Positions 10,119-53,066 of a DNA stretch of 64,000 nucleotides are shown in pieces (position 1 is the first letter of the stretch; the number at the start of each line of letters is the position of its first letter). The stretch lies in the sequence record NC_014636.1; one strand, given 5' to 3'. The notes below the pieces were generated by a model that was not told the DNA's origin, made no database searches, and was given only the letters and a program-made list of their open reading frames with translations. The position numbers and the translations under genes are program-made.

Positions 10119-10128
10119 CGGAGGCCAA

Positions 10129-14046: not shown

Positions 14047-14089
14047 TCGTACCTACCCGGTACCCTTAACCGTAACAATTACGGTTTTT

Positions 14090-14116
14090 GCCCCAACTTA
14101 GGTTGGGGCTTTTTTT
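14090..14116 (+). terminator. Intrinsic terminator after gene 35
   Basis: GCCCCAAC-TTAG-GTTGGGGC followed by a T7 run. Confidence 0.85.
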
Positions 14117-14126
14117 ATTCCAATCT

Positions 14127-14134
14127 CATAAATA
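14127..14134 (+). promoter_or_regulatory. Putative late promoter (CATAAATA) for distal fibre 1
   Basis: ATAAATA core about 25 nt upstream of ATG 14160, directly after the terminator. Confidence 0.6.
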
Positions 14135-14159
14135 ATGAAAACTAACATGAGGATTAGAA

Positions 14160-17100
14160 ATGGCAGATCTTAAATTAGGGTCTCAGATTGGTGGAAATCT
14201 AATCTGGCATCAAGGAATTCTGGAATTAAATCCTGTTGACGATAAACTATATTATCAAGATCAGGAAATGATGACAACTAGAGGCAATCAAACTCTACTG
14301 GGTGCAATTAAATTCGGTACTCCGAATGATATGTACGATATTGAAAGTATGAGTGATGGGGCAGGCGGAATTAAGCGTTATCTACGTAAGTTTAGATCTG
14401 GTGCTACATCTACTATTTGGCACGAAACTATTACCGATCGTTTATACACAATTTCAACCGGTGTTACTGATACCGCTCCACAATTCACGTTGAATAACGG
14501 TGATAGTGCGACGTTTCAATATCCAGTATTAACTAACAGTCCACAATCTGGATTGGGGAATGCATTAGCAAGAAAAGATTATGTTGACTCTATTGATGCG
14601 AAAAACGTTGCTAAAGCAGGCGACACGATGTCCGGGGATTTACTTTTTAACTCAACAGCAAGAAAAATTCGAGTTAACGAGATTGCTAGTATTACATCTG
14701 GATGGGATGCAGCTGGTAATTCTACCTTTTTCAAATTGGGTGCTTATGATGTATCAAAGGGTGGCGACTTACTCGAAATAAGAGCAGCTGGTGCTGGAGT
14801 TGGAAACAGAACATCTGGATTCGATGTCAGAACAACAAAGAACATTTCAAATACACCGCTTTATGTTGGCGACAACATGGTTTATCATCCGGGAAATAAA
14901 CCTACTCCGGGCGATATCAATGCATACACAAAATCCGAAGTAGATGAAAAACATTGGATTCGAGTAAAAGACGAACGTGCCGCAATGATTGCGCCAAACG
15001 TATTACCAAAGAGTACAATGGCAGCTTATTTCACAAATCAAAGCGACGTTAGTTCTAGCTGGGTTTCTGGATTCACTGTGAATGGCTGGGATAGCACCTA
15101 CGCAGCTTGGTCATTGTTTGCTGGTTCACGTTCAGACGTCGATCAAAATCAGTTATGGTTTAAGCATGGTCGTTCCTCATGGCTTCCTAGCTCAAGAATC
15201 TATCACGAACAAGATAAACCAACAAACGACGAACTAAATCTGGTATCTCGCGCTGGCGATAGCATGACCGGTGTTTTGAACATGAAAGTTACTGATAGTA
15301 TGGGATTTGGAAAGTATTCTATCAGAATGAACAACGGTTCTATTGGTGGATTAAATCAACTGGTATTCGGAGATCCATCCGATACTACATCAGAAGGTAT
15401 TGCTTGGCCGAAGACCGGCAAAAATGATAGCGCGACAACAAACGCAGAATACGATTTGTTGTGGGCACTTGATGGTGATTTAAAGTTCAATAATAAGAGT
15501 ACATACGGCGAGTGGAATAAACCAACAAACGAAGATCTAAATCTTGTTTCCAGATCTGGGGATTGGATGAATGGTAAACTGGAAATTAGAAATGCTGAAT
15601 TTGAAGTAAAACATAATAACGTTAGACGTGTTATTACTCGTCTTGGTGTGCAAAATGATGCCAAACCATTCATGGTGTTGATTTGTCCAAAATACGTAGG
15701 CAAAGCATTACCGAAACGCGGGTTTGTTGGTCGTGTTACTTTCGAACGTGGAGCAACCACTTCAACTCTACAATCACAGTATGTTGACATTTCTGCTGTT
15801 ACTGCATACACGGCAACCGATGCGCAGATTCATTATGCTAGTTACTATGCTAATGTCAAACTTGTTTATCACACTCACACAGACGGTATCGAATATCTGG
15901 CATTGTATCGTAACATTCAAAGTTCTGCTACTGTGTTCATAGACGGATATTTGTATGGTTCCGAAGAAATGATTGTTATTTCGGATGCAACTGGATTAAC
16001 TGTCACTGATGTTTCAACCAGAGAAAGAATCTATAGTTCTGGTAATAAACCAACAAACGAGGATCTAAATCTGGTATCTCGCGCTGGCGACACAATTACC
16101 GGGGATCTTGTGGTTAGTGGAAAAATTACGGTATCTAAAGTATTACTATCTGGCGCACAAGGGACAGAAGAAAACGCATTAACTCGTAAGGATTACGTAG
16201 ATACTAAAGTAGGTACCGCAGTTCAATCGGTAACAGCTACCGGCGCAGTCAAGAGCACTGGCGGTATTAATCCAGTAATCAGCTTGGTAAATGCAACAAC
16301 AACAGAAGATGGCGCAATGTCTGCTGCTGATAAAGCCAAGTTGAATGGACTTCCTGCTGCTGCTGTGAATAAGACTGGCGATTCAATGACTGGTAGTTTG
16401 ACTTTCACAAATGATAGTCAACTTGTCTGGAGTAGAAACACCGATTGGGCTAAGATTGGATTTAAAAACGATTCCGACTCGGATGCTGATAGTTATATGT
16501 GGTTCGAAACTGGAGATAACGGAAACGAATATTTCAAGTTTAGAGTTAAACCTACTGGTTCTACTACATCGGAAGATGTGTTTTTAATAAAAAGAAACGA
16601 AACGAGATCCAACGGTAGATTTTTTGTAGATCCATCAATATCAGGTAGTGATTTAATTACGTTGATTGGGACACCCAATCCAACCGGAACTAATGCTCGT
16701 GGTATAAGTGGATATGAATCAACAGGCACAACTCGTGAATGGGGTGTAGGTGCATATTCAGAAAATGGTGTGATTTTGTATTCCTATTTGGGATTCGGAG
16801 AAACTCCATGGAATAATGGAGTTAAAATATACGCAGATAAAGTAGTTTCTCCAACCTCGTTCAATGCTCCTGATTTTATTCAGACAACACCGCAAAGTAG
16901 TGTAGCTGGTGCGAGTACAAGAAAGGATTATGTTGATACTCAAATTGCGGCAATAGACGCGAAAAATGTTTCTAAAGCTGGCGATACTATGACTGGCGAA
17001 TTGACTATGCCTAAGGTTAAAAGTGCGTTAAACTTGTTGGACAAAGCCAGTATTAGGTTTGCAGATCTGACTAACACTTGGTTCCATATATATTCAGAAG

Positions 17101-18101
17101 GAAATCAGTTTAAGATCAGTCAAGGAACTACTGCACAAACAAACGTATTTGCAATAAACAGCAACGGTGATATGGATATTGCGGGTTCGACTATTTCTAA
17201 GTATTTTAGAACTGATGAACTAGGAGGAACTAATACAGTAGCTCCATTTGCGAGTAAATCCAGTGGTGGTTCTTATGCCGCGATGTATACTAGATATGCT
17301 CCATTCCATACTGATGTTGTGCAAACTGGATCATCTTATGCTCCTAATGCTTCAATCAGATATACACATAACGGCACATACGCTGGTATGTATTCGACTG
17401 GTGTTTTGTGTGAGAGTGCAGGAACTCCTGGTAAATATACTATTCATCACATTAACCAATCTGCTGGTTCATCCAAAGTTTGGAGCTTTGATGGTAGTAC
17501 AGGTAGATTTACTGCTGATGGTCCTATTAGTTGTACCAATATTGATGTAAATGACGTTATTAGCGGAGAAAATTTACATCTTACTGGAAATATTAGACTG
17601 AACAATAGTGCTCCTACTATTACCATGCAAGATACCGATCACATGGGCGCATTCTTGCACACAAATAGTAATAACTTCTATGTGTTGAGATCTCCGACTG
17701 CGAATAACGGAAACTTCGATAGTGGTCCAGGTGGTGTTCATCCAATGACATTAAACTTGTCAACTGGCGATGCACAATTTAGCCGCAACGGTAGCTTTAA
17801 CGATGTTCAGATTAGATCTGATATTAGACTGAAATCTAACTTCGAACCAATCTTGAATGCTGTTGATAAAGTTTGCACATTGAGCGGTAAGACATTTGAT
17901 AAAGTTGGATGCGACAAACGAGAAGCTGGTATTATTGCTCAAGATCTTGAGAAAGTATTGCCAGAAGCGATTGGTAGTTTTAAAAATACTGCTGGTGAAG
18001 AGTATCTGACTGTTTCTAACTCTGGTGTTAATGCACTATTGGTAGAAGCTATCAAAGAACTTAAAGCCGAAATCGAAGAACTTAAATCTAAACTTAACTA
18101 A
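14160..18101 (+). CDS. Distal long tail fibre 1 (gp36-gp37 fusion-like) with C-terminal peptidase S74 intramolecular chaperone
   Basis: N-terminus MADLKLGSQIGGNLIWHQG matches the T4 gp36 start pattern; RKDYVD and AGD.MTG fibre repeats; C-terminal SDIRLK...REAGIIAQDLEKVLPEA plus coiled coil. Confidence 0.85.
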   Translation: MADLKLGSQIGGNLIWHQGILELNPVDDKLYYQDQEMMTTRGNQTLLGAIKFGTPNDMYDIESMSDGAGGIKRYLRKFRSGATSTIWHETITDRLYTISTGVTDTAPQFTLNNGDSATFQYPVLTNSPQSGLGNALARKDYVDSIDAKNVAKAGDTMSGDLLFNSTARKIRVNEIASITSGWDAAGNSTFFKLGAYDVSKGGDLLEIRAAGAGVGNRTSGFDVRTTKNISNTPLYVGDNMVYHPGNKPTPGDINAYTKSEVDEKHWIRVKDERAAMIAPNVLPKSTMAAYFTNQSDVSSSWVSGFTVNGWDSTYAAWSLFAGSRSDVDQNQLWFKHGRSSWLPSSRIYHEQDKPTNDELNLVSRAGDSMTGVLNMKVTDSMGFGKYSIRMNNGSIGGLNQLVFGDPSDTTSEGIAWPKTGKNDSATTNAEYDLLWALDGDLKFNNKSTYGEWNKPTNEDLNLVSRSGDWMNGKLEIRNAEFEVKHNNVRRVITRLGVQNDAKPFMVLICPKYVGKALPKRGFVGRVTFERGATTSTLQSQYVDISAVTAYTATDAQIHYASYYANVKLVYHTHTDGIEYLALYRNIQSSATVFIDGYLYGSEEMIVISDATGLTVTDVSTRERIYSSGNKPTNEDLNLVSRAGDTITGDLVVSGKITVSKVLLSGAQGTEENALTRKDYVDTKVGTAVQSVTATGAVKSTGGINPVISLVNATTTEDGAMSAADKAKLNGLPAAAVNKTGDSMTGSLTFTNDSQLVWSRNTDWAKIGFKNDSDSDADSYMWFETGDNGNEYFKFRVKPTGSTTSEDVFLIKRNETRSNGRFFVDPSISGSDLITLIGTPNPTGTNARGISGYESTGTTREWGVGAYSENGVILYSYLGFGETPWNNGVKIYADKVVSPTSFNAPDFIQTTPQSSVAGASTRKDYVDTQIAAIDAKNVSKAGDTMTGELTMPKVKSALNLLDKASIRFADLTNTWFHIYSEGNQFKISQGTTAQTNVFAINSNGDMDIAGSTISKYFRTDELGGTNTVAPFASKSSGGSYAAMYTRYAPFHTDVVQTGSSYAPNASIRYTHNGTYAGMYSTGVLCESAGTPGKYTIHHINQSAGSSKVWSFDGSTGRFTADGPISCTNIDVNDVISGENLHLTGNIRLNNSAPTITMQDTDHMGAFLHTNSNNFYVLRSPTANNGNFDSGPGGVHPMTLNLSTGDAQFSRNGSFNDVQIRSDIRLKSNFEPILNAVDKVCTLSGKTFDKVGCDKREAGIIAQDLEKVLPEAIGSFKNTAGEEYLTVSNSGVNALLVEAIKELKAEIEELKSKLN

Positions 18102-18134
18102 GGAGGACGGGGAGAAATCCCCGTTTAAATTATG
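18101..18134 (+). promoter_or_regulatory. Hairpin-bridged ribosome-binding site of the gp38-like gene
   Basis: AGGAGG (18101-18106), then ACGGGGA-GAAA-TCCCCGT stem (18107-18124), 7 nt, and ATG 18132; same design as T4 gene 38. Confidence 0.75.
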
Positions 18135-18572
18135 GTAGCATTACCGTTTTGGCTTAGCACGGCCAATACAGAATTAAGAGCCAATGGATGGGCTAGCAAC
18201 ATGAGAACACAAGCGGGTTTGCCTGCTGCTGGATTTATGAGTCAGTTGGTAAATAAAACCGCGATCAGTTTGATTGCTGCACCAAGTAGAACTAGCTCAA
18301 TGCCAGTTTATTTCTCATACGTAGGTGGAAAAGTTATTATGGAAGTTCCAACATATAACTTGAAACAAGAGATTATACTCGGCATGCCATATGTAAATAT
18401 TACATGGACTGGTCCAGTAGAAGCACAGGGATATCATGGTGGATGGCAGAGAATGGATGCTGGAATGATTAAAATGGTGAAAACAGTTCAAGCGACGACA
18501 GAATTTGTTATTACGTTTTCTAGCTCACCAGATGGAACAACATCAAGACATCAGTGGACGTTTAAAAACTAA
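18132..18572 (+). CDS. 38: Short gp38-like fibre-tip adhesin
   Basis: N-terminal FWLSTA..E...GWASNMRTQAGLPAAGFMSQLVNK resembles the Trp-containing gp37-attachment domain of T2-type gp38; position after the S74 fibre. Confidence 0.6.
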   Translation: MVALPFWLSTANTELRANGWASNMRTQAGLPAAGFMSQLVNKTAISLIAAPSRTSSMPVYFSYVGGKVIMEVPTYNLKQEIILGMPYVNITWTGPVEAQGYHGGWQRMDAGMIKMVKTVQATTEFVITFSSSPDGTTSRHQWTFKN

Positions 18573-18593
18573 GGCACCTTCGGGTGCCTTTTT
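18572..18593 (+). terminator. Intrinsic terminator after the gp38-like gene
   Basis: AGGCACC-TTCG-GGTGCCT plus T-run. Confidence 0.85.
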
Positions 18594-18594
18594 G

Positions 18595-18601
18595 CTAAAT
18601 A
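18595..18601 (+). promoter_or_regulatory. Putative late promoter (CTAAATA) for distal fibre 2
   Basis: Immediately after the terminator, 27 nt before ATG 18628, which has a GAGGAG SD. Confidence 0.65.
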
Positions 18602-18627
18602 CTGCTATAAACTGAGAGGAGTCTATA

Positions 18628-21600
18628 ATGGCAGACCTTAAATTAGGATCACAAATCGGAGGTAATCTGATTTGGCACCAGGGCATTCTTGAGCTAAACC
18701 CTCTTGATGATAGCCTGTTTTATAAAGAATTCGATGTGATCACCTCAAAGGGCGGTCAGACAATTAATGGCGGTATTAATCTAAAAGGCGATATCGTTAC
18801 AACTGGAAAAGTTATTGCAGTCGGCAATGATGTGGGTTGGGGACAAGCACCAAACGCAGCATTCAACATGGACAAAGATAACACAGCTGGTGCTCACTGG
18901 CTTATTGCAAGTCGTAAAGCAGATGGAACCCCGCGCTCTGGTATTCAAGTTCTTACAAACGATGTTGGCGAAGTTAGAATTTACACAAACAAAAACGCTA
19001 ACTATGTCGGATTCCGAGATGGCCAAGTTTTTATCCCTGCAACGACGCCATCGGCAGCGTCTCACGCAGCTCGGAAAGATTATGTAGATCGTGAAGTTGA
19101 TAAAGCGATGCAGTTCGCAGAAACAACTACCGATAAACTCACTGCTGATCTGGCTACCGCAAATACCAAGATTGATACCCTTGATGCACAGAATGTAAAG
19201 ATTACTGGCGCTCAATCAATCGCTGGAACAAAGACATTTACCGACCCCGTTGTTTTGGAAGATCAGCCAACTGCTGATACTCATGCAGCAAACAAGAAAT
19301 ACGTCGATACCAAAGTCGGTACTGCGGTCCAAGGCATTGCGACTACTGCACCATTGACTACTACTGGAGGCGTCAATCCAACGCTGGCCATCACGGCTGC
19401 TTCGCGCACTGCTTCCGGTTCTATGAGTGCTCAAGACAAAGTTAAACTAGACGATCTTCCAGCCGACGCTTTGAGCCGTTCTGGTGGTAACATGAAGAAC
19501 GGTGGATATATCAACATCGAAGGTGTTGGTGGATTGCGTTCATTGTATAACAGCAAGACATATTCTATTATGCGAGATCATAATAACGGCAACGTTACTT
19601 TAGGCGCTGCTAGTGGTGATCTGTATTTGGGATATAATACAACTGCCGAAGAATATACAACAAAAAACGTTGTATTGCATCAAGCAATGAAATGGAATGC
19701 GGGTAATGGACGAGTTCTGGTTGATACAGATGGATTTATTCCATGGGCTTCTATCAAAGATAAAGTTGGTCTAGAAGGTAAGACTAAGAATATCAGGGGT
19801 CCAATCAACTTTGACGAATACGAGTCAACCGGTTTTTATAACTTGTATTTGGCACGTGCAACTGGATCAGTTAATCCTCCTCCATTGGATTACGGTACAA
19901 TGTTTGTTATTGGCTCAGATAAAGACGCTAATACCTTCGTGACTCAAATCGCGACAGATAGAACACAAGGCTCCACATACATCAGAACTAGAAATGATGG
20001 TACAATGGCTTGGACACCTTGGGTAAAACAAATCGATGAACGTGGCGGAGATGTTGATAAACTAAAAGTGAATCAAGATCTAGTAGTAGGAAACGGAATC
20101 GAAGTAGCGGCAACATCCGTCGTTCATACTGTAAAAGCATTAGGAAATACAGCGGATGCTAAACCTTCTCTAATTCTTCTTGCGAAGCGTTCTAGTTCTA
20201 CTCCTATTGAGAAAAATGGATTTATAGGAAAAATTATTTTCAATCGCGGTGCTACTACCTCTAATTTGCAAAGTGATTATGCAGAAGTTGCAGTATATAG
20301 CGGATATACCGAACAGTATGCAAGGATCCATTATCTATCCGGCGCAAAAACATCTGGCACAAAACTGGTATATCATACATACAACGGCGTTGAATATATT
20401 GCGCTGTATCGTTCCGCAATTAGTATGGCACATGTTGTAGTTGATGGACTTAGATATGGAGCACATCCGATACTTATTCCAGACGCAACCGGATTGACAG
20501 TTACCGACATTAGTGTCAGAGAAGAGATTCTTAGTCTTCATAATCTACCGACAAATGATGATTTAAATCTAGTGTCTCGCGCTGGTGATGCTATGACAGG
20601 AACACTGACTGCTGCTAAAATCAAAAACTCAATTATGGTGAATGATAAAGGTAGTATTAGTTTCCAAGATGCGGCAGATACAAGATTCCATTTGGCATCA
20701 GAATCAAACTCTCTTACTTTGAGTCACGGCAACGAAGGACAAAACGCTCTTGTTTCTTTCCTTGGTGATGGATCTATTAACGCAACTGGACCAGTTGTAG
20801 CAACTGCATTCAGATCTTCTGGTGATTATGGTTTCGTTCGTTCGACTAATAGCACTCAAGGTATGTTTGTTGGTGCAGACGGTAGAACTATTATCGGTGG
20901 CGGAGCTGGTGCAACAGGAACAATCCATTTGCGTCCTCAAGGCATAGGAACAACAACAGTTGAAACTATTATCGCGAATGATGGTACTATTACACTGGGC
21001 AAACAGGGAACGGCTGCTGGACATCTAGTTAATAAGGCATATGTTGACGCAGTAGACGCGAAGAACGTTGCGAAAGCCGGCGATTCAATGACTGGTGCAT
21101 TAAACAACACCAAAGCGTTTGTCTCGAATGATTATATCATGGTAGACAAGAACTCCAAGAAGTTGGCATTGGAAATTGATTCCGGTACATCTAAGATTCC
21201 TTATATTAGCGTCGATGCTACTTATAGAGCATTAGAATTTTTGCCTAATAGAAGGGTACTGGCAACACATGGATATGAAGTCGGAGGAACTAATTCCACT
21301 TCCGAATATTTCTTTACTCCATTATCTGGAGTATCAACTGATTGGGCAAGAGGATTTACTGCTATTGAGACCGATGGTTCAAGAAAAGCGGCATTTGGAT
21401 TCCACGGAAAGCCAACCGGAGAAATTGATTTCATTTATCTTGGAGTTGGTGCTGCTCCTTGGAATGCCAACGCAGGTATTCAAATCAACGCTAACAATCA
21501 GATGTTGATGAAAGATGGACAATCCGGCGCTGCTACATTCGGCGCGGGCGCGAGTGCTTTGTTTATCAATAATACATCAAACGCTTGGTTCCATATTAAC

Positions 21601-22623
21601 AGACAAACCGGAAAAGGATTTGAAGGACTTGCTATTTCCGATGGCGTTGCTCCCAGTGAAACTAACCCAATCGCTGTATTTGAAGCTAGTAAAATACTAT
21701 TGCGTAGACCAACATATGTGTATGGTAATGGTCAATTCCAGATTAACACAGGCGGTAATCCAGTATTAGAATTTCATGTTCCTGGAAAACACGCTCGTAT
21801 TGTATGGCTTGATAATACAACAGGCGATTTGAACTTTGGTCAGTCGAATGGTTCATTTGGTGAAGCGAAACGATACATGCAAATGCGAGCAGAGGGAACC
21901 GGATTGACTATGTATGGAACTAACTGGGCAGCCGGTGGTTCACACGCATATGCAGATCAATGGGCAAGAGAAGCTCCTATTCAAATTGATTTTGGAGCCG
22001 TGGCTGGTTCGTCTGATTATTATCAAATCGTGAAGGGACGTTCCGTTGTTTCGGGTGTTGGATATACAACTGACGTTGAACTTGGAGTATTGCGTTCTGG
22101 CAACGTTTGGGGTCAAGGTATTATTCGGGTTGGTTCCGGTGAAAGTGGTACTAAAGGAACAATGGGAATTTATACTTTTGATATCAGTGGTAACTTTAGA
22201 TCTCCGGGTGGAGTATACGGAGGAACTGGAGTATATGATTCTGGTGACCGCGTATATTCTGTAAATAACCCGCCGCCGTCAAACACGCACACACACAATA
22301 ATATCAGAGCTACTAGCGCAGTCACGATATTTGATGGGGATGTTGGTGGAGGAAACTTCGCATTAACTCGTCCATGGACAGACTTTGACATGATAATGTT
22401 TGTTGTTGGCTGGGATGATATGGGATTAGTTAGTCCGAAAACATTCACTAGATATGATCTAGAATATCTACAAGCAATTGGTTGGAACTACGATATTTCT
22501 GGTGGTTCGGGTGGATTAGGTTGGGGCGGAAGATTCTCTGCTGATAACCGGACATTCGTTACCGCTTGGGAAAATGGTAGAGTTCGAAAAGTTGTCGGAT
22601 ATAATCTGAGAACCGTTAACTAA
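18628..22623 (+). CDS. Distal long tail fibre 2 (second gp36-gp37 fusion-like), no S74 chaperone
   Basis: First 25 residues identical to fibre 1 (MADLKLGSQIGGNLIWHQGILELNP); gp37-like YADQWAREAP...SDYYQIVKG segment; different C-terminal tip. Confidence 0.85.
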   Translation: MADLKLGSQIGGNLIWHQGILELNPLDDSLFYKEFDVITSKGGQTINGGINLKGDIVTTGKVIAVGNDVGWGQAPNAAFNMDKDNTAGAHWLIASRKADGTPRSGIQVLTNDVGEVRIYTNKNANYVGFRDGQVFIPATTPSAASHAARKDYVDREVDKAMQFAETTTDKLTADLATANTKIDTLDAQNVKITGAQSIAGTKTFTDPVVLEDQPTADTHAANKKYVDTKVGTAVQGIATTAPLTTTGGVNPTLAITAASRTASGSMSAQDKVKLDDLPADALSRSGGNMKNGGYINIEGVGGLRSLYNSKTYSIMRDHNNGNVTLGAASGDLYLGYNTTAEEYTTKNVVLHQAMKWNAGNGRVLVDTDGFIPWASIKDKVGLEGKTKNIRGPINFDEYESTGFYNLYLARATGSVNPPPLDYGTMFVIGSDKDANTFVTQIATDRTQGSTYIRTRNDGTMAWTPWVKQIDERGGDVDKLKVNQDLVVGNGIEVAATSVVHTVKALGNTADAKPSLILLAKRSSSTPIEKNGFIGKIIFNRGATTSNLQSDYAEVAVYSGYTEQYARIHYLSGAKTSGTKLVYHTYNGVEYIALYRSAISMAHVVVDGLRYGAHPILIPDATGLTVTDISVREEILSLHNLPTNDDLNLVSRAGDAMTGTLTAAKIKNSIMVNDKGSISFQDAADTRFHLASESNSLTLSHGNEGQNALVSFLGDGSINATGPVVATAFRSSGDYGFVRSTNSTQGMFVGADGRTIIGGGAGATGTIHLRPQGIGTTTVETIIANDGTITLGKQGTAAGHLVNKAYVDAVDAKNVAKAGDSMTGALNNTKAFVSNDYIMVDKNSKKLALEIDSGTSKIPYISVDATYRALEFLPNRRVLATHGYEVGGTNSTSEYFFTPLSGVSTDWARGFTAIETDGSRKAAFGFHGKPTGEIDFIYLGVGAAPWNANAGIQINANNQMLMKDGQSGAATFGAGASALFINNTSNAWFHINRQTGKGFEGLAISDGVAPSETNPIAVFEASKILLRRPTYVYGNGQFQINTGGNPVLEFHVPGKHARIVWLDNTTGDLNFGQSNGSFGEAKRYMQMRAEGTGLTMYGTNWAAGGSHAYADQWAREAPIQIDFGAVAGSSDYYQIVKGRSVVSGVGYTTDVELGVLRSGNVWGQGIIRVGSGESGTKGTMGIYTFDISGNFRSPGGVYGGTGVYDSGDRVYSVNNPPPSNTHTHNNIRATSAVTIFDGDVGGGNFALTRPWTDFDMIMFVVGWDDMGLVSPKTFTRYDLEYLQAIGWNYDISGGSGGLGWGGRFSADNRTFVTAWENGRVRKVVGYNLRTVN

Positions 22624-27126: not shown

Positions 27127-27633
27127 TCAGGATTTCAGACGACCAATAAAGTCATATTTGGTGCGAAGCTCGGTGATCATAGCGATACCGTTGTTTTTCG
27201 CGCTGTATTCTTCGATACCAAGCAGGTCGCGCATTTGTGCGTAGGACACGAAGAACACTTGATGTTTTGCTTCTACCTCACGCCAAGCTTTTACGATACT
27301 GGCATCGGTGAAGATTTCGGTAGATCGCTTGCACAAGTAATCGCCCAATGCTTTGTTTTGCTCGGTACGCGGATTATTCAAGCGACGCAGAACTTCCTTA
27401 AAGCCAGTTTTGCGTTTCTGAATACCGACGTGGTTTACGCTAACGATATCGCGCAGGCGAGCGTCATTAGTCGGGAAAGTAGCGATCAGATAGAAACCAG
27501 GAGTAGTCAGATCGTGATTCACAGGTACCCGAGCAATTTGGCCAGGAGTAAACTCCAGAATGCCAGTTTTGTTAGGGAACAGAGTACCGATATACAGTGC
27601 GTTTCCCATAAGGAGATTAGTATTCAATTTCAT
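27127..27633 (-). CDS. ndd: Nucleoid disruption protein Ndd
   Basis: A..IGT, L..PGFY, HVGIQKRKTGFKEVL (T4 YVGNQRSKQGFSAVL from memory), VFFV..AQMRDL; syntenic between 52 and rIIB. Confidence 0.75.
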   Translation of the reverse strand: MKLNTNLLMGNALYIGTLFPNKTGILEFTPGQIARVPVNHDLTTPGFYLIATFPTNDARLRDIVSVNHVGIQKRKTGFKEVLRRLNNPRTEQNKALGDYLCKRSTEIFTDASIVKAWREVEAKHQVFFVSYAQMRDLLGIEEYSAKNNGIAMITELRTKYDFIGRLKS

Positions 27634-27660: not shown

Positions 27661-27689
27661 ATTATTACACACTAGCTAACGTGTGTCAA
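27661..27689 (-). promoter_or_regulatory. Sigma70-type early promoter for ndd
   Basis: TTGACA-16 nt-TAATAAT; spacer contains an ACACAC/GTGTGT inverted repeat. Confidence 0.65.
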
Positions 27690-27935: not shown

Positions 27936-28157
27936 TTAACAGGAGAAAGTCATATGATCATAACAGTATTGAATGATCTCTTGTTGACGTTTGTTATCCC
28001 AATAGAAGAAATCCTTATCGGTACCTCTGATTGAATCCGCCAGTTCCGTTGGCAAGTTGTTGAACAACGCTTGACCAAAACGGTATTGGTCGCTTGTCTC
28101 GCAAATGCTCTTGCGGATAAGATCATACATCTGCGGTACAGTGAGTTTCATTGTCAT
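27936..28157 (-). CDS. Hypothetical protein
   Basis: GGAG SD before ATG 28157; R.GQA.FN.L motif seen in small myophage proteins. Confidence 0.65.
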   Translation of the reverse strand: MTMKLTVPQMYDLIRKSICETSDQYRFGQALFNNLPTELADSIRGTDKDFFYWDNKRQQEIIQYCYDHMTFSC

Positions 28158-28158
28158 A

Positions 28159-28725
28159 TCAGTTGCTCCAGTCATAGTCAACGCCCAGAAAGTCGAATAC
28201 TTCTACCAGTTCGGCTTTCACGGTACGAGCACAGTTGGCGTGCTTCATTTGTTTGATTGTCGGTGGTGTCAGATGCGCTACCGCGTTTCCGAAAGCTTCG
28301 ATACGCGAGTGGGTCGCATCCATTGCCGAACGTTGCATGTCATACAGTGCTTCCTCAGAAACACGGCACATATACAGGTGGCAATGCATACCACTTTCAG
28401 GAATCTTGTGTGTGCAAAGATGCAGCAGATGATCTGGATTCGGAGTGTATCCAATTTCTTCTTTGCATTCGCGCACCGCAGCTTCGATCAGGCTTTCGCC
28501 TTCATCTACCATACCACCCGGGAAGCCGAAACGAGAATCCCAACGAACATTCAGAAGGATTTTGTGTGCCCAAACGTGCTTCTTGTCTTCTGGGAAAGTC
28601 GGGTCGGTTGTATTGATATATGGCTGCACTTTGTCACAGTAGAAGCAGACAAACGCAGCATCCGATTTGCCACGTGCACCGCTTTCTACTTCAATGCAAT
28701 CGACAAACGATTTAAATGATTTCAT
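28159..28725 (-). CDS. Nudix hydrolase, NUDT16/X29-like
   Basis: Nudix box [23 protein letters not shown] preceded by [14 protein letters not shown], compare NUDT16 [16 protein letters not shown]. Confidence 0.85.
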   Translation of the reverse strand: [188 protein letters not shown]

Positions 28726-28754
28726 TTTGTTTACTCTCTTTGGTTGATGTGCTC

Positions 28755-28782
28755 AGTATACTGGTTCAGAATCACAAGTCAA
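28755..28782 (-). promoter_or_regulatory. Sigma70-type early promoter for the Nudix gene
   Basis: TTGACT-16 nt-TATACT with an upstream A-tract. Confidence 0.7.
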
Positions 28783-28794
28783 CACTTTTTAAAA

Positions 28795-28822
28795 TAAAAA
28801 AGCCACCCGAAGGTGGCTTTTG
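28795..28822 (-). terminator. Intrinsic terminator after rIIB
   Basis: AGCCACC-TTCG-GGTGGCT plus T-run on the minus strand. Confidence 0.85.
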
Positions 28823-33369: not shown

Positions 33370-35214
33370 TCAACCCTCCTCCTCAATTTCTGCATCAAAA
33401 TCTTCACCGAAACCAAGCCATGTTTTACGCTTGCTTTCATCATCACCGAACAACATTTCCAGCATAGCGGGAGTGTCTTCGTCGATAACGATCTGTTCCA
33501 ACACAAGATTTTCGATACACTGCTTGTATTCGCAGTTTTTACCTTCGGTAGTCAGTGTGCCAAGACCCTTAATGTGTCGATGTGTCCACTTGCTATCGAA
33601 TTTCTTAGAACGGAACTCTTCGCGTGAATAGCTCCAATCAGTTTTCTTACCGTTGGTACTGATATACTCAGGTGTCCTAACGATATGAATACGACCTTGC
33701 TCGAACCAATGTGGCCAATACTTGTAGAAGAATGCAATAGCCAGCATAGCGATTGAACCCTTACCGTCTTGGTCCGCGTCGGTCATGATTGCGATGTTTG
33801 TATAAGCCGGAGCTTCTTTCGACCGAAGATCAACGTTAAGAATACCAAGCAGATCTGAAATCTCCTTGTTCTTCAACACTTCATGATCAGCTAAGTTCCA
33901 AACGTTCAGCATCTTACCACGCAACGGATAGCCGCCTTGTGACTCTTCGTTACGGAATCGAATGAAAGGACCGATAGCTGAATCCCCTTCTGCCAGGAAC
34001 AAAGTTGTCTTGGTTCGACCCAGTCCAGACGCTTTAACGTGCTTGGCAACGTTGGCAGCTTTCGCTTTCTTCTGTGCTTTGGTAGCCGCTGCTTTATCGG
34101 CAGCTTCTTTCTTCGCAAGTGCAGACGCGATAATCGGATCAATAACTTCCGGTGTTTTCAGAATCTTGCGAGCCAATCCCTTGTAATCCAAGTTCATGTG
34201 ATCGCGAATCTGTGCCCACGGGGAGCTTAACCGCTCTTTTGTCTGACCATCATACTTCGGCGCTACCAGATTACGAATAAACAAGCCAATAATCAAGCAT
34301 TCTTTAATTCGAGCTTTGTTAATTTCGATCTTGTGCTGACGCTTGATCATCGGGATCAGTTCTTCGCTCAGACTATCAAGCACACCATAAACGTGATTGC
34401 CGCCTTGCTTAGTATGAACACCGTTAACAAAACTCAGTTGTCTGTATTCTTCCGATGTGCCAAAGAACACACTAACATTGTCATCATTGTGACAAACAAC
34501 ATCGCCGAATTGTGCCGCAAACTTCTGGAATTTGCTATCGACTTTCTTGCCGTTATACTTGAATGTAACTTGTGGGAAGTTCACTGCCAGCGTGATTAGA
34601 CGCGACTTGATCACTTGCTCAAAGTCTTCATCAAGATTGAATACGCCGAATCTGGTGAAGTCTGGGACGAAGGTAACAACCGTGCCCTTGAACTTACCTT
34701 TCTTCACGGAATAGCTTACTTCATCCGCGTTGTTTGTGCAACTTACAGTAACAACAGTTTCGCCATTACCAGTTTCGCCAATAAAGCTATCGGAGAAGAA
34801 GTTAGTCAGCGCAGAGCCGACACCGTTTTTACCGATTGTCTTTCGATCTGCGGAGAAGTTTGAGCCGGCGCGAGCGCGAGTCCAAGCAGCTAGTGGCAAC
34901 GGAACTTCTAACCCCTCGGGTGTGACTACCGTGCCTTGTGGCAGACCACGACCGTTATCTTTCACCGACACTTTATTATCGGCAACAGTGATTTCAATCA
35001 CGTTTGCATGTTCGAAATTGGTACGAATCGCTTCATCCACGCTGTTATCGATAACTTCGTCGGTGATTTTTACCAGACCAGGAACATACGTTAGTGGTTG
35101 AAATTTACCATCGATTAGTACATCGTGTGTTTCCGTCGATACTGATCCCACATACATATCGGTGTTAATAAGGCAGTGTTCTTTGTCGGATAAAACTTTA
35201 AACTCTTGGGACAT
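33370..35214 (-). CDS. 39: DNA topoisomerase II large subunit (gp39 and gp60 fused, no bypass)
   Basis: EVIDNSVDEA, DNGRGLP, GKNGVGS, LAEGDSA, YPLRGK, MTDADQDG, KGLG in one frame; start MSQEFKV at 35214. Confidence 0.96.
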   Translation of the reverse strand: MSQEFKVLSDKEHCLINTDMYVGSVSTETHDVLIDGKFQPLTYVPGLVKITDEVIDNSVDEAIRTNFEHANVIEITVADNKVSVKDNGRGLPQGTVVTPEGLEVPLPLAAWTRARAGSNFSADRKTIGKNGVGSALTNFFSDSFIGETGNGETVVTVSCTNNADEVSYSVKKGKFKGTVVTFVPDFTRFGVFNLDEDFEQVIKSRLITLAVNFPQVTFKYNGKKVDSKFQKFAAQFGDVVCHNDDNVSVFFGTSEEYRQLSFVNGVHTKQGGNHVYGVLDSLSEELIPMIKRQHKIEINKARIKECLIIGLFIRNLVAPKYDGQTKERLSSPWAQIRDHMNLDYKGLARKILKTPEVIDPIIASALAKKEAADKAAATKAQKKAKAANVAKHVKASGLGRTKTTLFLAEGDSAIGPFIRFRNEESQGGYPLRGKMLNVWNLADHEVLKNKEISDLLGILNVDLRSKEAPAYTNIAIMTDADQDGKGSIAMLAIAFFYKYWPHWFEQGRIHIVRTPEYISTNGKKTDWSYSREEFRSKKFDSKWTHRHIKGLGTLTTEGKNCEYKQCIENLVLEQIVIDEDTPAMLEMLFGDDESKRKTWLGFGEDFDAEIEEEG

Positions 35215-35278
35215 ATTACCTCTTTCTATGGGGAGCTGTTTAGACTCCCCATTATACACAAAAACGACTTACTATAAA

Positions 35279-35773
35279 CTAACTAACGATCTGTTTGTGC
35301 CACTTTTCGTTCTTTTCAACGATAGACTGGCTTACCAGATTAATCACTGTTCTAGCCGTGCTTTCGTTGGCAGGCATGCCTTTTTGCTGAACAAGATGCA
35401 TATAAACGACATCGAGACCAGCAATGATCAGATCTGCGAACTCTGCATGGAGCGGTTCAGGATGTTGCTTTTTCGGCTTGTTGATCACCGTAGACATTTC
35501 GCCCAGTTCTTCGGTACATTTGCCTAGCACTTCATGAACCGTACGCTCTTTGGCAATCAAACTATTTCGCAGAACATCACAGAATGCTGTGGTAAGAGAA
35601 TGCTTTGGAACTTGTCGAGCTGCATTCCAGCCCATAACCCAAGTAGTCCAACAAGCGCCACGTACCATAAACTGCTGGTCATCAGTCAGATTGTACCAAT
35701 CGTATGCTTTCTGGAATGCAAGTTCGCATTCCATACGATCCACAACTTGAACAACGTTAATATTGTCGAGCAT
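35279..35773 (-). CDS. Protein with C-terminal MazG-like all-alpha NTP pyrophosphohydrolase domain
   Basis: KCTEELGEM...AEFADLII (EExxE...ExxD). Confidence 0.65.
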   Translation of the reverse strand: MLDNINVVQVVDRMECELAFQKAYDWYNLTDDQQFMVRGACWTTWVMGWNAARQVPKHSLTTAFCDVLRNSLIAKERTVHEVLGKCTEELGEMSTVINKPKKQHPEPLHAEFADLIIAGLDVVYMHLVQQKGMPANESTARTVINLVSQSIVEKNEKWHKQIVS

Positions 35774-36218: not shown

Positions 36219-36962
36219 ATGAATTATAAAATGATATACGAAAAACTCACTTCCGTCAACACAGAATCAGATAAATTTGAAGTTCATCACATAATTCCTC
36301 GGTGCATGGGAGGAACAAATGATCCTGTAAATCTCGTTAGATTAACGTATCGCCAACATTACATAGCACACAAACTCTTAACCAAGATTTACCCGGATAA
36401 CAATAAGCTTGAAATCGCATTCAAACTCATGGTATTCAAAAATTCACATAAGTATTATAACTCTAGAGACTTTGAGAATGCAAGAGTTTTGCAATCAACG
36501 CATATGAGAAATAATAATCCTATGAAATCATTCGAGACTAAGGATAAAATGCGACAAACTATGATTGATAAGTATAAAGCTGGATGGACTCCCAGAGTTG
36601 GTAAATCGCACAGTGAACAAGCCAAAGCTAATATATCCACTGGAAGATCTGGCAAACTGTGCGGCGAAGAAAATCCGAATTATGGTAAACAGCTCAGTGA
36701 AGAAACTAAACTGAAAATATCCAAATCCAGAATCGCAAATTCAGAGTTATACAAAAAGCCAAGAACCGAAGAAGTTAAGCGTAAGATATCCGAATCGTGT
36801 CGCAACAGGGTGATTTCCGATGAAACTAAACGAAAGATTTCTGAATATAAACTAAACTTACCACCTGTCACTTGTCCTCATTGTAATAAGACTATGAAAC
36901 AGGGACCTGGTGCTGTTCGTTGGCATTTTGATAATTGTAAACTATCCCCTAAGAATAGATAA
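36219..36962 (+). mobile_element. Free-standing HNH homing endonuclease gene with NUMOD3 repeats (mob-like)
   Basis: HHIIPRCMGGTNDPVNLVRLTYRQHYIAH; four S/T-EExKxKIS repeats; CPHC..HFDNC; opposite strand to all neighbours. Confidence 0.9.
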
Positions 36963-52038: not shown

Positions 52039-53066
52039 TATTCTCCTTTGCTATGAACAGCATTGGCATAAAGTTCTTGAATGTAGCGATCAACGGCTTT
52101 CTTGTCGTCTTCATCTACAGCCAACCCCTGGATGTAATCTTTCATTTGCTCAATTACTTTCTTCGTCTCGGTGATGTCTTCAACATCAGACGCAAAAGTA
52201 TACATCTGCTTCGGTCGGAACTCAAAGCATATATTCTCCAATTGAGCCATAACAGCGTCCAACTTATCGTCGAACTCATAGATCACCAATTCTACGACCT
52301 TGTCCTTGCATTTGTCAATAGCTTTGATGTCGAAATCTTTGCGATAATCAACTCGAATATGCCACATGTCGGGATTCGCGACAAACTCAATTGTCTTTGT
52401 ATCTGTGTCGAACACCCAGAAGCCACGAATCTCATTACTGTCACCCATAGTCAGAGTGTACGGAGTGCCGAGATAATGGATGTTTGCTTTCTTACTGGAA
52501 GTATGATAGTGACCGCTATATACTTGCTTGTAGCGATTCAGGAACTCCATACTCTCGCCAGTTGACGGAATGCCCTTGTAGAACTCAAACCCATCAAGTT
52601 CCCAGTGTCCAACGCAATAGTCAGAGTTTGTTTCGGCCGCATATTTTTCAATGGCAGCCTCGTTTTCGTCACACTTCCACGGAAACAGATCCCACAAAGT
52701 ATCAGCGAAACCGATTGTTGTGGGCGTTTCGATAACGTGAAATTTTTCAATACCATGAAACACTTCGTTAACACTGTTTGGACTGATTTTATCCTTAACG
52801 TGCATATCGTGGTTGCCCACAATGACATAGATGTCATCGAATGCATCTTGATAGATGGGAGTCAGTTGCTCACGCTGAAATTTCAACGTCTCTTGGCTTA
52901 GACCAGAACGAACGTCGAACCAGTCACCAGTTTGAATCATGTGTCGGATACCATGCTGCTTTGCATAGTTACACAGAAAGATAGATCCACGCAAGATCGC
53001 GTTTGTCATATAAGCACTGTCTTTCTGGGTCCCGACGTGCTTATCACCTTCAATGATAATCTTCAT
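52038..53066 (-). CDS. 47: Mre11/SbcD-like recombination endonuclease subunit gp47
   Basis: GDKH.G, QTGDWFD, GNHD, GHWE, SGHYH, GTPY..T..D; start MKII at 53066 with AAGGA SD. Confidence 0.96.
   Translation of the reverse strand: MKIIIEGDKHVGTQKDSAYMTNAILRGSIFLCNYAKQHGIRHMIQTGDWFDVRSGLSQETLKFQREQLTPIYQDAFDDIYVIVGNHDMHVKDKISPNSVNEVFHGIEKFHVIETPTTIGFADTLWDLFPWKCDENEAAIEKYAAETNSDYCVGHWELDGFEFYKGIPSTGESMEFLNRYKQVYSGHYHTSSKKANIHYLGTPYTLTMGDSNEIRGFWVFDTDTKTIEFVANPDMWHIRVDYRKDFDIKAIDKCKDKVVELVIYEFDDKLDAVMAQLENICFEFRPKQMYTFASDVEDITETKKVIEQMKDYIQGLAVDEDDKKAVDRYIQELYANAVHSKGE

Follow-up and report, generated by a model that had tools for sequence, protein, structure and literature searches.

The "NudE" Nudix hydrolase of Aeromonas phage phiAS5 belongs to a phage and bacterial branch of the NUDT16 family

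Introduction

The genome of the T4-like Aeromonas phage phiAS5 (NC_014636; 225 kb) carries a gene, phiAS5_ORF0127, whose product GenBank lists as "NudE nudix hydrolase" and RefSeq as "nudix hydrolase", and this locus raises the question of which Nudix subfamily the protein belongs to and what it may hydrolyse. The window considered here is the whole stretch of 64,000 nucleotides of this genome that was analysed. An earlier note, made from the sequence alone, had likened the protein along its whole length to eukaryotic NUDT16/X29 and had gone on to propose an early gene with its own promoter, a role in erasing host ADP-ribosylation or in removing NAD/FAD caps from RNA, and an origin by cross-domain gene transfer. 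The two groups of enzymes between which the locus has to be placed both have known activities: NUDT16/X29 proteins act in U8 snoRNA decapping, as (d)IDP diphosphatases, in deNADding and deFADding, and in the processing of ADPr to phosphoribose, and T4 NudE.1 hydrolyses ADPR, Ap3A, FAD, NAD and NAD-RNA.

Results

ORF0127 is a real phage gene with an intact Nudix box (Table 1). Its neighbours in phiAS5 and in close kin are rIIB, a 73-aa ORF (ORF0126) and ndd, which together mark the rIIB-ndd early region. The hexamers of the putative promoter are found at the same places in Ah1, PX29 and Aeh1, with a diverged spacer between them, and the same four-phage alignment keeps the core of the Shine-Dalgarno-like element (AAGAGG/AAGAGA). 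The predicted terminator, whose hairpin is also kept in Ah1 and Aeh1, would close the upstream rIIB and set it apart from the Nudix promoter. The proposal of an early gene with its own promoter is consistent with this arrangement, in which a sigma-70-type match follows the rIIB terminator and is retained in four phages, although this is a reading of the sequence only. A search of sequencing runs for infection RNA-seq yielded metagenomes only. ORF0126 is probably co-transcribed with ORF0127. It matched no Pfam family, and the homologues found all follow the Nudix gene of Ah1, Aeh1 or PX29; as a candidate conserved partner of the Nudix family it was discarded, being confined to the same phage group. 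The RefSeq label "MazG-like" of ORF0133 was not reproduced by Pfam at E <= 1e-3.

Table 1. Features of the ORF0127 locus (positions in the window)
Feature	Position	Strand	Basis
Nudix CDS, 188 aa, ATG start (phiAS5_ORF0127)	28159..28725	-	ORF list; annotation; Pfam PF22327; profile against PDB; model and fold search
Nudix box, residues 71-93 (G71-x5-E77-x7-R85 E86-xx-E89 E90-x-G92)	28447..28515	-	Reading of the translation; all catalytic and metal-binding glutamates kept
Putative sigma-70-type, T4 early-like promoter (-35 TTGACT, 16-nt spacer, -10 TATACT)	28755..28782	-	Consensus scan, 10/12 matches
Shine-Dalgarno-like AAGAGAG, 8 nt before the ATG	28735..28741	-	Sequence reading
Predicted intrinsic terminator (GC-rich 10-pair stem, then T run)	28798..28821	-	Terminator scan
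Small downstream ORF, 73 aa (phiAS5_ORF0126)	27936..28157	-	Begins 1 nt past the Nudix stop codon; ORF list and annotation

The match of ORF0127 to the NUDT16 family is far above chance. In Pfam, the best hit is the Nudt16-like family PF22327 (E 5e-14; 53 bits for a gathering score of 27), with the NUDIX family PF00293 scoring lower (46 bits), and PF22327 is also matched by all 150 top relatives of the phage protein. A word-indexed protein search with ORF0127 alone returned the PX29 cluster only, so that an exhaustive search was needed: phmmer, run with the single sequence against 1.84 billion proteins, reached a nematode "U8 snoRNA-decapping enzyme" at E 3.9e-11. Against the PDB, phmmer aligned residues 54-146 of ORF0127 with residues 43-139 of human NUDT16, spanning an 11-residue block and the block HLYMCRV...IEAFG (HFYAKRL...LEVLG in the human enzyme), and the family profile carried the alignment on to the C-terminal helix (...AELVEV... 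versus ...EQLLEAL...); all three blocks aligned in the earlier note were thereby reproduced. A profile built from 126 relatives retrieved human NUDT16 and Xenopus X29 from the PDB at E 2e-28 (102 bits) and TIRR at 75 bits, and the best Nudix protein outside NUDT16 reached 51 bits (E 8e-13) through the Nudix box only. Identity to human NUDT16 and X29 is only about 20%, but the Pfam family, the R-x-D and GFP motifs and an equivalent of E136 are kept.

The AlphaFold2 model of ORF0127 (pLDDT 94.6) points in the same direction. With Foldseek, its top 39 matches in the PDB are all NUDT16, X29 or TIRR (167-194 aligned columns; TMq 0.65-0.76), the first fold outside this group appearing at 0.48, and in the ESM Atlas it matches an arthropod NUDT16 cluster with a TM of 0.81 over 172 residues (ORF0127 10-188). 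The predicted fold agrees with NUDT16/X29 from end to end, the elements on the N- and C-terminal sides of the Nudix core included, and the whole-length resemblance noticed earlier is thus borne out by Pfam, profile and fold alike. TIRR (NUDT16L1, syndesmos), a paralogue without catalytic activity whose ligands are 53BP1 and RNA, has the fold and the family in common with ORF0127 (TM 0.65-0.71); the phage protein, however, possesses all of the catalytic glutamates. ORF0127 is probably a NUDT16-like homodimer, since the dimer prediction gave an ipSAE of 0.64 (best control 0.21), a mark attained by 20 of 30 known homodimers and by 1 of 23 monomers, though model memory of solved NUDT16 structures may contribute. 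The predicted interface comprises residues 35-44, 58-66 and 128-164.

The metal site is intact and the NUDT16-type purine pocket is conserved in kind, as judged from the active-site residues described for NUDT16 (PMC4485890, PMC7337524, PMC6459841). Within the Nudix box, E86 and E90 are invariant across the 126 relatives, and R85, E89 and E77 each occur in 116-125 of them; E143, present in 124 of 126, corresponds to the extra metal ligand E136 (PMC4485890). The alignments place R61 and D63 of the motif R61-W-D63 on R50, which contacts phosphate, and D52, and G67-F68-P69 on the GFP motif, whose F57 belongs to the stretch that reads purine position 6 (PMC4485890). F25 replaces the base-stacking H24 (F in 122/124 relatives), E172 replaces Q170 (E in 106/125), T168 replaces S166 and M72 replaces F61. 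The swaps of His24, Gln170 and Ser166 for F25, E172 and T168 appear chemically similar, and they represent the consensus of the phage and bacterial branch.

This branch is large. The ORF0127 family comprises 625 clusters at 50% identity, and the exhaustive phmmer search yielded at least 91 such clusters at E <= 1e-10, with 85 representatives outranking nematode NUDT16. The nearest phage and metagenomic relatives are 41-44% identical over about 165 residues and the best named eukaryote is 38% identical over about 90. The five nearest relatives that were looked up are metagenomic proteins, four of them in phage-like or ambiguous contexts, and some family members are bacterial chromosomal genes. 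In the maximum-likelihood tree, ORF0127 lies inside a phage/metagenomic clade of 27 rows (SH-aLRT 99); eukaryotes constitute a separate group, and the metazoan NUDT16s form a clade of their own, away from ORF0127. A FastTree analysis with generic Nudix outgroups was left unrooted, as the outgroups did not form a single clade. P0140 and P0126 branch near the eukaryotic clade. Isoelectric points, considered as a hint of RNA binding, were acidic in all groups and not informative. A scan of genome contigs with the profile of an 8-row alignment had also returned 80 bacterial loci; the best reach about 56 bits on the family HMM, by the Nudix box only, and the scan, dominated by the generic Nudix pattern, has little bearing on how frequent members are in bacterial genomes.

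These data bear on the supposed transfer across domains. A recent capture of ORF0127 from a eukaryote would suit the description of NUDT16 as a metazoan family (PMC2566886), and a topology uniting the phiAS5 clade with eukaryotes was not rejected in an AU test (p = 0.29), which leaves room for a deep sister relation. Yet the number of clusters and of representatives above nematode NUDT16, the chromosomal bacterial members, the phage and metagenomic nature of the nearest relatives and the grouping of eukaryotes apart from the strongly supported ORF0127 clade all argue against it, as do Phe25 and Glu172, which fit the phage/bacterial consensus and not the metazoan His and Gln. Such a capture is extremely improbable, and the suggestion of transfer is not supported for ORF0127 itself. 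The protein is a member of the NUDT16 family, not an orthologue of metazoan NUDT16, and the phage and bacterial branch to which it belongs is large and has been little discussed.

The label "NudE" is a misnomer, because only the Nudix box matches T4 NudE.1. ORF0127 was tried as an orthologue of NudE.1 and rejected: the BLASTP match (27 bits) is confined to 40 residues about the Nudix box. T4 NudE.1 has no PF22327 match, and the family HMM gives it 27 bits and the NudE of phage CHI14 42 bits, against 208 bits for ORF0127. Synteny differs as well: nudE adjoins the lysozyme gene in T4 (where this is e) and in CHI14. In phiAS5, ORF0127 is situated between rIIB and ndd, and the lysozyme gene is followed by an ORF that is not a Nudix. 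When all 225 kb of the genome were scanned in six frames, no NudE.1-type gene and only one other Nudix domain came up, in the NMNAT-Nudix fusion ORF0077. The view that ORF0127 is a NudE.1 orthologue or a generic MutT-type dNTP sanitiser, for which the GenBank label and the weak BLAST match speak, is refuted by sequence, fold and synteny and is practically untenable: MutT-type structures rank far under NUDT16, and by sequence the protein clusters with NUDT16, not with MutT or T4 NudE.1, so that the earlier proposal withstands, as far as sequence goes, the refutation that the note had set for it.

Several relatives of ORF0127 occur in the company of genes linked to NAD and ADP-ribose. In the jumbo phages RaK2 and CBB, a full-length family member (153-156 bits on the family HMM) directly follows a Sir2 gene and lies near NAMPT and a PIN/PhoH gene; CBB_121 is a fusion of Nudt16-like and cREC domains. 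A viral contig of 234 kb has a WGR-PARP gene 1.2 kb upstream of its family member. In the clade of ORF0127 itself, NAMPT is found 3 kb upstream of one member (P0003), NAMPT and a long Nudix gene 4-6 kb upstream of another (P0007), and an NMNAT-Nudix gene with an adjacent RlaP near a third (P0152); a fourth (P0075) is an NMNAT-like and Nudt16-like fusion. Three other contexts of this clade lacked NAD/ADP-ribose genes. The architecture of P0075 mimics that of NadM among the NadM/NatV-type NMNAT-Nudix ADP-ribose pyrophosphatases, whereas the Nudix domain of the phiAS5 NMNAT-Nudix protein ORF0077 is generic and not Nudt16-like. A cellular relative (P0059) fuses Ham1/ITPase to a Nudt16-like domain and is encoded between the genes for adenylosuccinate synthetase and SAICAR synthase. 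NAMPT or NMNAT was present in 4 of 15 family loci and in none of 75 viral generic-Nudix loci (queries drawn from other parts of phiAS5), a rough comparison given that flank lengths differ, that large phages are generally rich in such genes and that some loci are mutually related. The informative contexts come from relatives 30-41% identical to ORF0127. Elsewhere in its genome, phiAS5 encodes NAMPT, the NMNAT-Nudix protein, an ADP-ribosylglycohydrolase (ARH), an Alt-like ADP-ribosyltransferase, RNA ligases, PNK and RlaP, as well as a dNMP kinase.

Discussion

We tentatively favour the view that ORF0127 is a homodimeric NUDT16-family pyrophosphatase, served by an early-type promoter, that acts on NAD/ADP-ribose-type substrates and takes the place of NudE.1, a reading to which we give slightly less than an even chance. 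The enzyme would bind a purine nucleoside diphosphate joined to another group (NDP-X), with the base stacked on Phe25 (His24 in NUDT16), and would cut the pyrophosphate with Mg2+ or Mn2+ held by E86, E89, E90 and E143. Its substrates would be molecules of the adenine-dinucleotide or ADP-ribose type, namely free ADP-ribose and its derivatives, NAD or FAD, and NAD-capped RNA; it would most likely be an ADP-ribose/NAD-type pyrophosphatase, and possibly an NAD-RNA decapping enzyme. This type of substrate is suggested by the relatives that adjoin, or are fused to, NAMPT, NMNAT, Sir2, PARP and cREC, and the activities of NUDT16 on ADPR, free NAD and NAD-, FAD- and dpCoA-capped RNA are in keeping with it (PMC7337524). 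Expressed from an early-type promoter of its own within the rIIB-ndd region, ORF0127 would serve as a functional stand-in for the NudE.1 that phiAS5 lacks, not as its orthologue. Both are stand-alone Nudix hydrolases of T4-like phages, and because the substrates of NudE.1 and NUDT16 overlap the phage protein is likely a functional analogue, although the two belong to different Nudix subfamilies and T4 NudE.1 behaves as a monomer while ORF0127 is predicted to dimerize. Against such substrates stand the poor activity of human NUDT16 on ADPR (Km 837 uM, kcat 0.18 per s; PMC6459841), its preference among nucleotides for IDP and dIDP (PMC4485890), the fact that no NAD/ADP-ribose gene adjoins ORF0127 in phiAS5 or close kin, and the presence in phiAS5 of both the ORF0077 Nudix domain and an ARH. 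Unlike the metazoan enzymes, ORF0127 is made in a bacterium, where m7G caps and snoRNAs do not exist.

The main rival is a (d)IDP/(d)ITP (6-oxopurine) pyrophosphatase comparable to mammalian NUDT16, which would clean nucleotide pools or counter deaminase-based immunity, its targets then being the dIDP-to-dITP signal of Kongming or the ITP of RADAR and Cad1/CAAD. NUDT16 prefers IDP and dIDP by means of the backbone amide of the GFP motif, a stacking aromatic residue and residue 170 (PMC4485890), and F68, F25 and E172 are conserved in kind, the carboxylate of E172 being able to accept the N1-H of hypoxanthine or guanine. The same residue, however, can equally serve as hydrogen-bond acceptor for the N6 amine of adenine, the part played by Gln170 in the ADPR complex (PMC6459841). 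The Ham1/ITPase fusion, the dNMP kinase of phiAS5 (phage enzymes of this class set off Kongming, and the Kongming signal passes through dIDP) and the reported pairing of CAAD with a Nudix hydrolase also favour this rival; on the other side, one ITP-linked context faces at least seven linked to NAD or ADP-ribose, and no phage Nudix has been reported against Kongming, RADAR or Cad1 in the literature searched. We regard this function as unlikely, though with a chance that deserves attention. A bolder version, in which the phage NUDT16-like enzymes including ORF0127 are counter-defence hydrolases of inosine nucleotides, acting for example on the dIDP/dITP of Kongming or the ITP/dITP flood of RADAR and Cad1, is doubtful; if it is true, deaminase-based immunity would have met its first enzymatic "signal eraser", with the corollary that the IDPase activity of animal NUDT16 descends from the phage and bacterial lineage.

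Anti-defence roles directed at ADP-ribose itself have also to be weighed. Cleavage of ADP-ribose-derived immune signals (cyclic ADPR isomers, His-ADPR) or of ADPR>P would draw on the very NAD/ADP-ribose gene associations that support our preferred reading; phage Nudix, Macro and NADAR proteins have been argued to counter mainly soluble ADPr derivatives (Iyer et al., PMC9503650), and the cREC fusion suggests processing of cyclic phosphates. The Thoeris antagonists in the literature searched are nevertheless sponges or other folds and the pocket of ORF0127 is of the generic NDP-X enzyme type, and this role seems rather improbable. The reversal of host ADP-ribosylation of DNA, RNA or protein in DarT/CmdT-type defence is very unlikely. 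NUDT16 does act on ADPr attached to protein, DNA or oligonucleotides, irrespective of the linkage (PMC12879935, PMC6459841), and a "mouth" resembling Phe36'/Phe61 may exist, with Y36 at the predicted dimer interface and M72 at the position of F61. The reaction, however, leaves phosphoribose on the base or residue, which remains modified (PMC12879935, PMC6459841); genuine removal is the work of macrodomain/DarG or ARH enzymes, and an ARH is encoded elsewhere in the phiAS5 genome. With chemistry of the NUDT16 kind, which does not restore the target, ORF0127 cannot act as an eraser of ADP-ribosylation. The functional part of the earlier proposal has to be divided: a place in an NAD/ADP-ribose network is plausible in outline from the neighbours and fusions of relatives, and erasure falls away.

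Our preferred reading, an NAD/ADP-ribose-type pyrophosphatase, also touches on a published arrangement. The Sir2-Nudix-cREC-PIN layout has been proposed as a system of NAD-dependent RNA repair (Iyer et al. 2022, PMC9503650), a paper in which the term NUDT16 is absent and the Nudix is not described as NUDT16-like. The Nudix of this jumbo-phage neighbourhood belongs to the same NUDT16-like family as ORF0127, but Sir2, cREC and PIN are absent around ORF0127, and no Sir2 or cREC was seen in the annotation of phiAS5. Found beside Sir2, PARP, NAMPT, NMNAT and cREC, and once fused to ITPase, the family is a candidate for NAD-cap removal, ADP-ribose recycling or the destruction of nucleotide immune signals. 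The "NudE" proteins of Aeh1-like Aeromonas phages and the "nudE_1" products of RaK2-like jumbo phages belong to a different Nudix subfamily from the T4 enzyme, and therefore results obtained with T4 NudE.1 are not simply transferable to them. The hundreds of diverged phage and bacterial relatives also change the discussion of the origin of NUDT16 and TIRR, and they offer small, tractable models of the NUDT16 enzyme.

Family assignment

Based on the Pfam, profile and structural evidence presented here, phiAS5_ORF0127 of Aeromonas phage phiAS5 is a mislabelled additional member of a known enzyme family and no new kind of system: its resemblance to NUDT16 is homology over the full length, not chance. 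By megablast the window is phiAS5 (NC_014636; Straboviridae, Chrysonvirus), record coordinates being window coordinates + 62000. The interval 28159-28725 (minus strand) is exactly one ORF of 188 aa with an ATG start, which GenBank labels 'NudE nudix hydrolase' and RefSeq 'nudix hydrolase'; an antisense 204-aa ORF (28105-28719, plus strand) was dismissed as a shadow ORF and not a gene.

The earlier note had aligned the protein with NUDT16 and proposed a likeness to NUDT16 and Xenopus X29 along the whole length. Its alignments were correct, the same blocks being returned by phmmer against the PDB (residues 54-146 on residues 43-139 of human NUDT16), and Pfam, profile, AlphaFold2/Foldseek and ESM Atlas results confirm the likeness throughout. 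The Pfam family PF22327 'Nudt16-like' scores 53 bits (gathering score 27) versus 46 bits for the generic NUDIX family, and is present in all 150 best phmmer matches. Exhaustive phmmer searching of 1.84 billion representatives returned 625 proteins with E <= 1e-3, of which 91 reached E <= 1e-10; one of these is a Plectus nematode 'U8 snoRNA-decapping enzyme' (E 3.9e-11). A profile of 126 relatives matches human NUDT16 and X29 at ~102 bits (E 2e-28; profile positions 52-186), the NUDT16 paralogue TIRR at 75 bits and the top unrelated Nudix protein at 51 bits, the last in the Nudix box only; among 5.8 billion proteins it found an arthropod NUDT16 at E 8e-32. The AlphaFold2 model has a pLDDT of 94.6 and a pTM of 0.90, and the 39 top Foldseek matches in the PDB are all NUDT16, X29 or TIRR (167-194 aligned columns, TMq 0.65-0.76, then 0.48). 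In the ESM Atlas, an arthropod NUDT16 cluster is matched over residues 10-188 with a TM of 0.81.

A relationship to NudE.1, the gene e.1 Nudix hydrolase of T4, was rejected: the shared stretch comprises only 40 residues around the Nudix box, at 27 bits in the pairwise comparison, and T4 NudE.1 has no Nudt16-like Pfam match. With the family HMM, phiAS5_ORF0127 scores 208 bits, and full-length matches are also given by the homologues in phages RaK2 (153 bits), CBB (156 bits) and Aeromonas phage LAh_9 (119 bits), whereas T4 NudE.1 (27 bits) and the NudE of Serratia phage CHI14 (42 bits) match in the box only. The nudE genes of T4 and CHI14 lie next to the lysozyme gene, unlike the phiAS5 gene. 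HMM scores, Pfam and gene position thus agree with the earlier grouping with NUDT16 rather than NudE.1. Since scanning all six frames of the complete genome of phiAS5 showed a single other Nudix domain, the one within the NMNAT-Nudix fusion ORF0077, the Aeh1-like phages have no NudE.1-type gene and carry a NUDT16-type gene in its place. Genes of the NudE.1 type were counted in 1262 phage records, mostly of enterobacterial T4-like phages, and their displacement in the Aeh1-like phages is of interest.

Relatives and phylogeny

Only Aeh1-like Aeromonas phages have close copies (88-100% identity), and the next relatives are 30-44% identical. Phage-like contexts surround P0004 (small same-strand ORF arrays on 117-kb contigs) and P0151, P0012 and P0007 (phage-genome-like), and locus L098 lies on a viral contig of 234 kb (IMGVR_UViG_3300029258_003221). 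Other relatives are cellular: P0169, from an Obscuribacterales MAG, has housekeeping gene neighbours, P0102 adjoins grpE and a Clp-type ATPase gene, and P0059 is a Ham1/ITPase + Nudt16-like fusion of 391 aa (L015:6001-7176, MAG GCA_964451885.1) encoded between purA (adenylosuccinate synthetase) and purC (SAICAR synthase). This fusion is the prokaryotic equivalent, in one polypeptide, of the mammalian ITPA and NUDT16 pair. The NUDT16 family, described only in metazoans and not found in yeast or plants in a 2008 survey (PMC2566886), has radiated widely in phages and bacteria. Its phage homologues are already auto-labelled in databases (UniRef 'U8 snoRNA-decapping enzyme'), and no paper discussing them was found in the literature searched; this unnoticed breadth is of interest.

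In a maximum-likelihood tree of 88 members, phiAS5, Aeh1 and PX29 group with P0003 (SH-aLRT 98), and a 27-row clade (SH-aLRT 99) unites this group with P0004, P0007 and P0075; the named eukaryotic proteins form a separate 12-row group across the midpoint. A recent eukaryotic acquisition was rejected on this placement in a phage/metagenomic clade apart from the eukaryotes, and the earlier proposal of a candidate for cross-domain transfer found no support for this gene. Forcing the phiAS5 clade together with the eukaryotes costs 19.7 log-likelihood units and is not rejected by the AU test (p = 0.29), so that deep order, root and direction of transfer cannot be claimed.

Active site and dimer

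No residue of the Nudix box is missing (G71, E77, R85, E86, E89, E90, G92). Residues defined as functional in NUDT16 (PMC4485890, PMC7337524, PMC6459841) were mapped through profile-to-NUDT16, arthropod-to-X29 and joint alignments.

Correspondence of functional NUDT16 residues in phiAS5_ORF0127
NUDT16	Role	phiAS5
His24	base stacking	F25
Arg50	phosphate contact	R61
Asp52	conserved	D63
Gly-Phe57-Pro	purine position 6 reading	G67-F68-P69
Phe61	active-site 'mouth'	M72
Glu136	metal ligand	E143
Ile164	packing against base	A166
Ser166	base/ribose contact	T168
Gln170	base contact	E172

Among the 126 relatives, position 25 is Phe in 122/124, and Arg61, Phe68 and Glu143 recur in 125, 109 and 124, respectively; at position 172, 106 have Glu and 9 have Gln. 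The pocket is therefore that of NUDT16 with two systematic swaps, His->Phe and Gln->Glu, which, as judged from the alignments, mark the phage and bacterial branch of the family. Glu172 could act as hydrogen-bond acceptor from the N1-H of hypoxanthine or guanine, and could equally accept from the adenine N6 amine, like Gln170 in the ADPR complex; because both base types could be accepted, this residue does not decide the substrate.

A homodimer is predicted (ipSAE 0.64 vs 0.21 for the best control; the benchmark mark was reached by 20/30 known homodimers and 1/23 monomers), with residues 35-44, 58-66 and 128-164 as the putative interface. NUDT16 is a dimer in which Phe36 of the partner subunit completes the active-site 'mouth' (PMC6459841). 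The nearly invariant Tyr36 falls within the predicted interface and might, tentatively, correspond to Phe36.

Locus and expression signals

The gene lies in a T4-type early region with the order rIIA, rIIB, phiAS5_ORF0127, a 73-aa ORF, ndd-like and topoisomerase gp52.

Features around the Nudix gene (window coordinates)
Feature	Position	Strand	Remarks
rIIB end	28827	-	
Terminator 3' of rIIB	28821-28798	-	strong hairpin + T run
Putative promoter of Nudix gene	28782-28755	-	TTGACT-16 nt-TATACT; 10/12 matches
Shine-Dalgarno AAGAGAG			between promoter and ATG of Nudix gene
phiAS5_ORF0126	27936-28157	-	73 aa; start 1 nt past Nudix stop codon

In an alignment of phiAS5 with phages Ah1, PX29 and Aeh1, the promoter hexamers are conserved in position with a divergent spacer, and the terminator is conserved in 3/4 phages. 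The promoter of its own that the earlier note had assigned to the gene is supported, at the sequence level, by sigma-70-type hexamers after the rIIB terminator, kept in place in related phages; the arrangement fits an early promoter of the host-polymerase type, a timing that we infer, no transcriptome of an infection having turned up in the sequencing runs searched. ORF0126 is probably co-transcribed with the Nudix gene; it matches no Pfam family, its homologues are confined to the Aeh1-like group, where they occur only 3' of the Nudix gene (Ah1, Aeh1, PX29), and its product is a possible co-expressed partner of the Nudix protein. No terminator was predicted between ORF0126 and the promoter (27661-27689, minus strand) upstream of the ndd-like gene (27127-27633, minus strand); the latter promoter is near-consensus (TTGACA, 17-nt spacer, TG-AATAAT with extended -10; 11/12 matches).

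Gene context and function

By its sequence, phiAS5_ORF0127 would be an intact NUDT16-type NDP-X pyrophosphatase, and direct evidence reaches only so far; the substrate reading is drawn from the genes that surround members of the family. The Nudt16-like gene of RaK2 and CBB-type jumbo phages comes immediately after a Sir2 gene, with NAMPT and a PIN/PhoH gene close by, and in CBB_121 (L176:2992-3891) the domain is fused to a cREC domain; in RaK2 (L174:2258-3549) the gene is annotated 'nudE_1'. This Sir2-Nudix-cREC-PIN neighbourhood has been proposed as NAD-dependent RNA-end repair, in which the Nudix enzyme would process ADPR>P (Iyer et al. 2022, PMC9503650). On the L098 contig, a full-length Nudt16-like gene is preceded, 1.2 kb upstream, by the gene for a 550-aa protein with WGR and PARP catalytic domains (1083-2735, plus strand). 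Within the phiAS5 clade, NAMPT lies 3 kb upstream of P0003, P0007 is preceded at 4-6 kb by NAMPT and a long Nudix gene, and an NMNAT-Nudix gene lies 5 kb upstream of P0152, to which RlaP is adjacent; in P0075 an NMNAT-like domain is fused to a Nudt16-like one, in imitation of the NadM architecture. NAMPT or NMNAT occurs in 4/15 family loci vs 0/75 viral loci with generic Nudix genes, a rough control with queries from distant parts of phiAS5 and unequal flank lengths. This recurrent linkage to NAD/ADP-ribose genes, plus one to inosine-nucleotide genes, is of interest. phiAS5 itself carries a rich NAD/ADP-ribose tool kit with NARP2-like salvage, encoding NAMPT, NMNAT-Nudix, an ADP-ribosylglycohydrolase (ARH), an Alt-like ADP-ribosyltransferase, RNA ligases, PNK and RlaP, none of which adjoins phiAS5_ORF0127. 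In record coordinates, NAMPT lies at 163859-165301, the ADP-ribosylglycohydrolase at 174220-175119, the Alt-like enzyme at 33374-35317 and the NMNAT-Nudix fusion, annotated 'cytidyltransferase', at 51549-52601 (L185:1549-2601, minus strand).

NUDT16 acts on ADPR, NAD and NAD-, FAD- and dpCoA-capped RNA (PMC7337524) and T4 NudE.1 on ADPR, Ap3A, FAD, NAD and NAD-RNA, so that the reported substrates largely overlap. Because of this overlap, the gene context, the NAD/ADP-ribose genes of phiAS5 and the status of phiAS5_ORF0127 as the phage's only stand-alone Nudix, we tentatively favour, at somewhat less than an even chance, an early pyrophosphatase that would act on ADP-ribose and adenine dinucleotides, possibly also decap NAD-RNA, and be a functional analogue of NudE.1. 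The main rival, a (d)IDP/(d)ITP hydrolase, seems to us doubtful; it would accord with the conserved NUDT16 pocket, with (d)IDP/(d)ITP as the best nucleotide substrates of NUDT16 (PMC4485890), with the ITPase fusion of the cellular P0059 in its purine-synthesis neighbourhood, and with the phiAS5 dNMP kinase, which would set off Kongming, a system whose signal, dITP, arises via dIDP. Were it true, the family would act enzymatically against deaminase-based immunity.

A third possibility, that the enzyme degrades immune signals derived from ADPR, appears improbable. The erasure of host DarT/CmdT ADP-ribosylation that the earlier note had envisaged is unlikely: phosphoribose stays attached to the target after NUDT16 cleavage (PMC12879935, PMC6459841), and phiAS5 has a separate ARH for true reversal. 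The observation in that note stands, and of its interpretation the family assignment was retained and the eraser role was not.

Elsewhere in the window, ORF0133 (35279-35773, minus strand) is a 'MazG-like pyrophosphatase' in RefSeq, yet has no Pfam match at E <= 1e-3. A homing-endonuclease gene (36219-36962, plus strand) separates dexA from the MazG-like/small-ORF block; the early region into which it is inserted is otherwise on the minus strand. Four consecutive very large ORFs (1237, 1316, 1313 and 1331 aa), annotated as tail-fibre subunits, occupy 6405-22623 on the plus strand.
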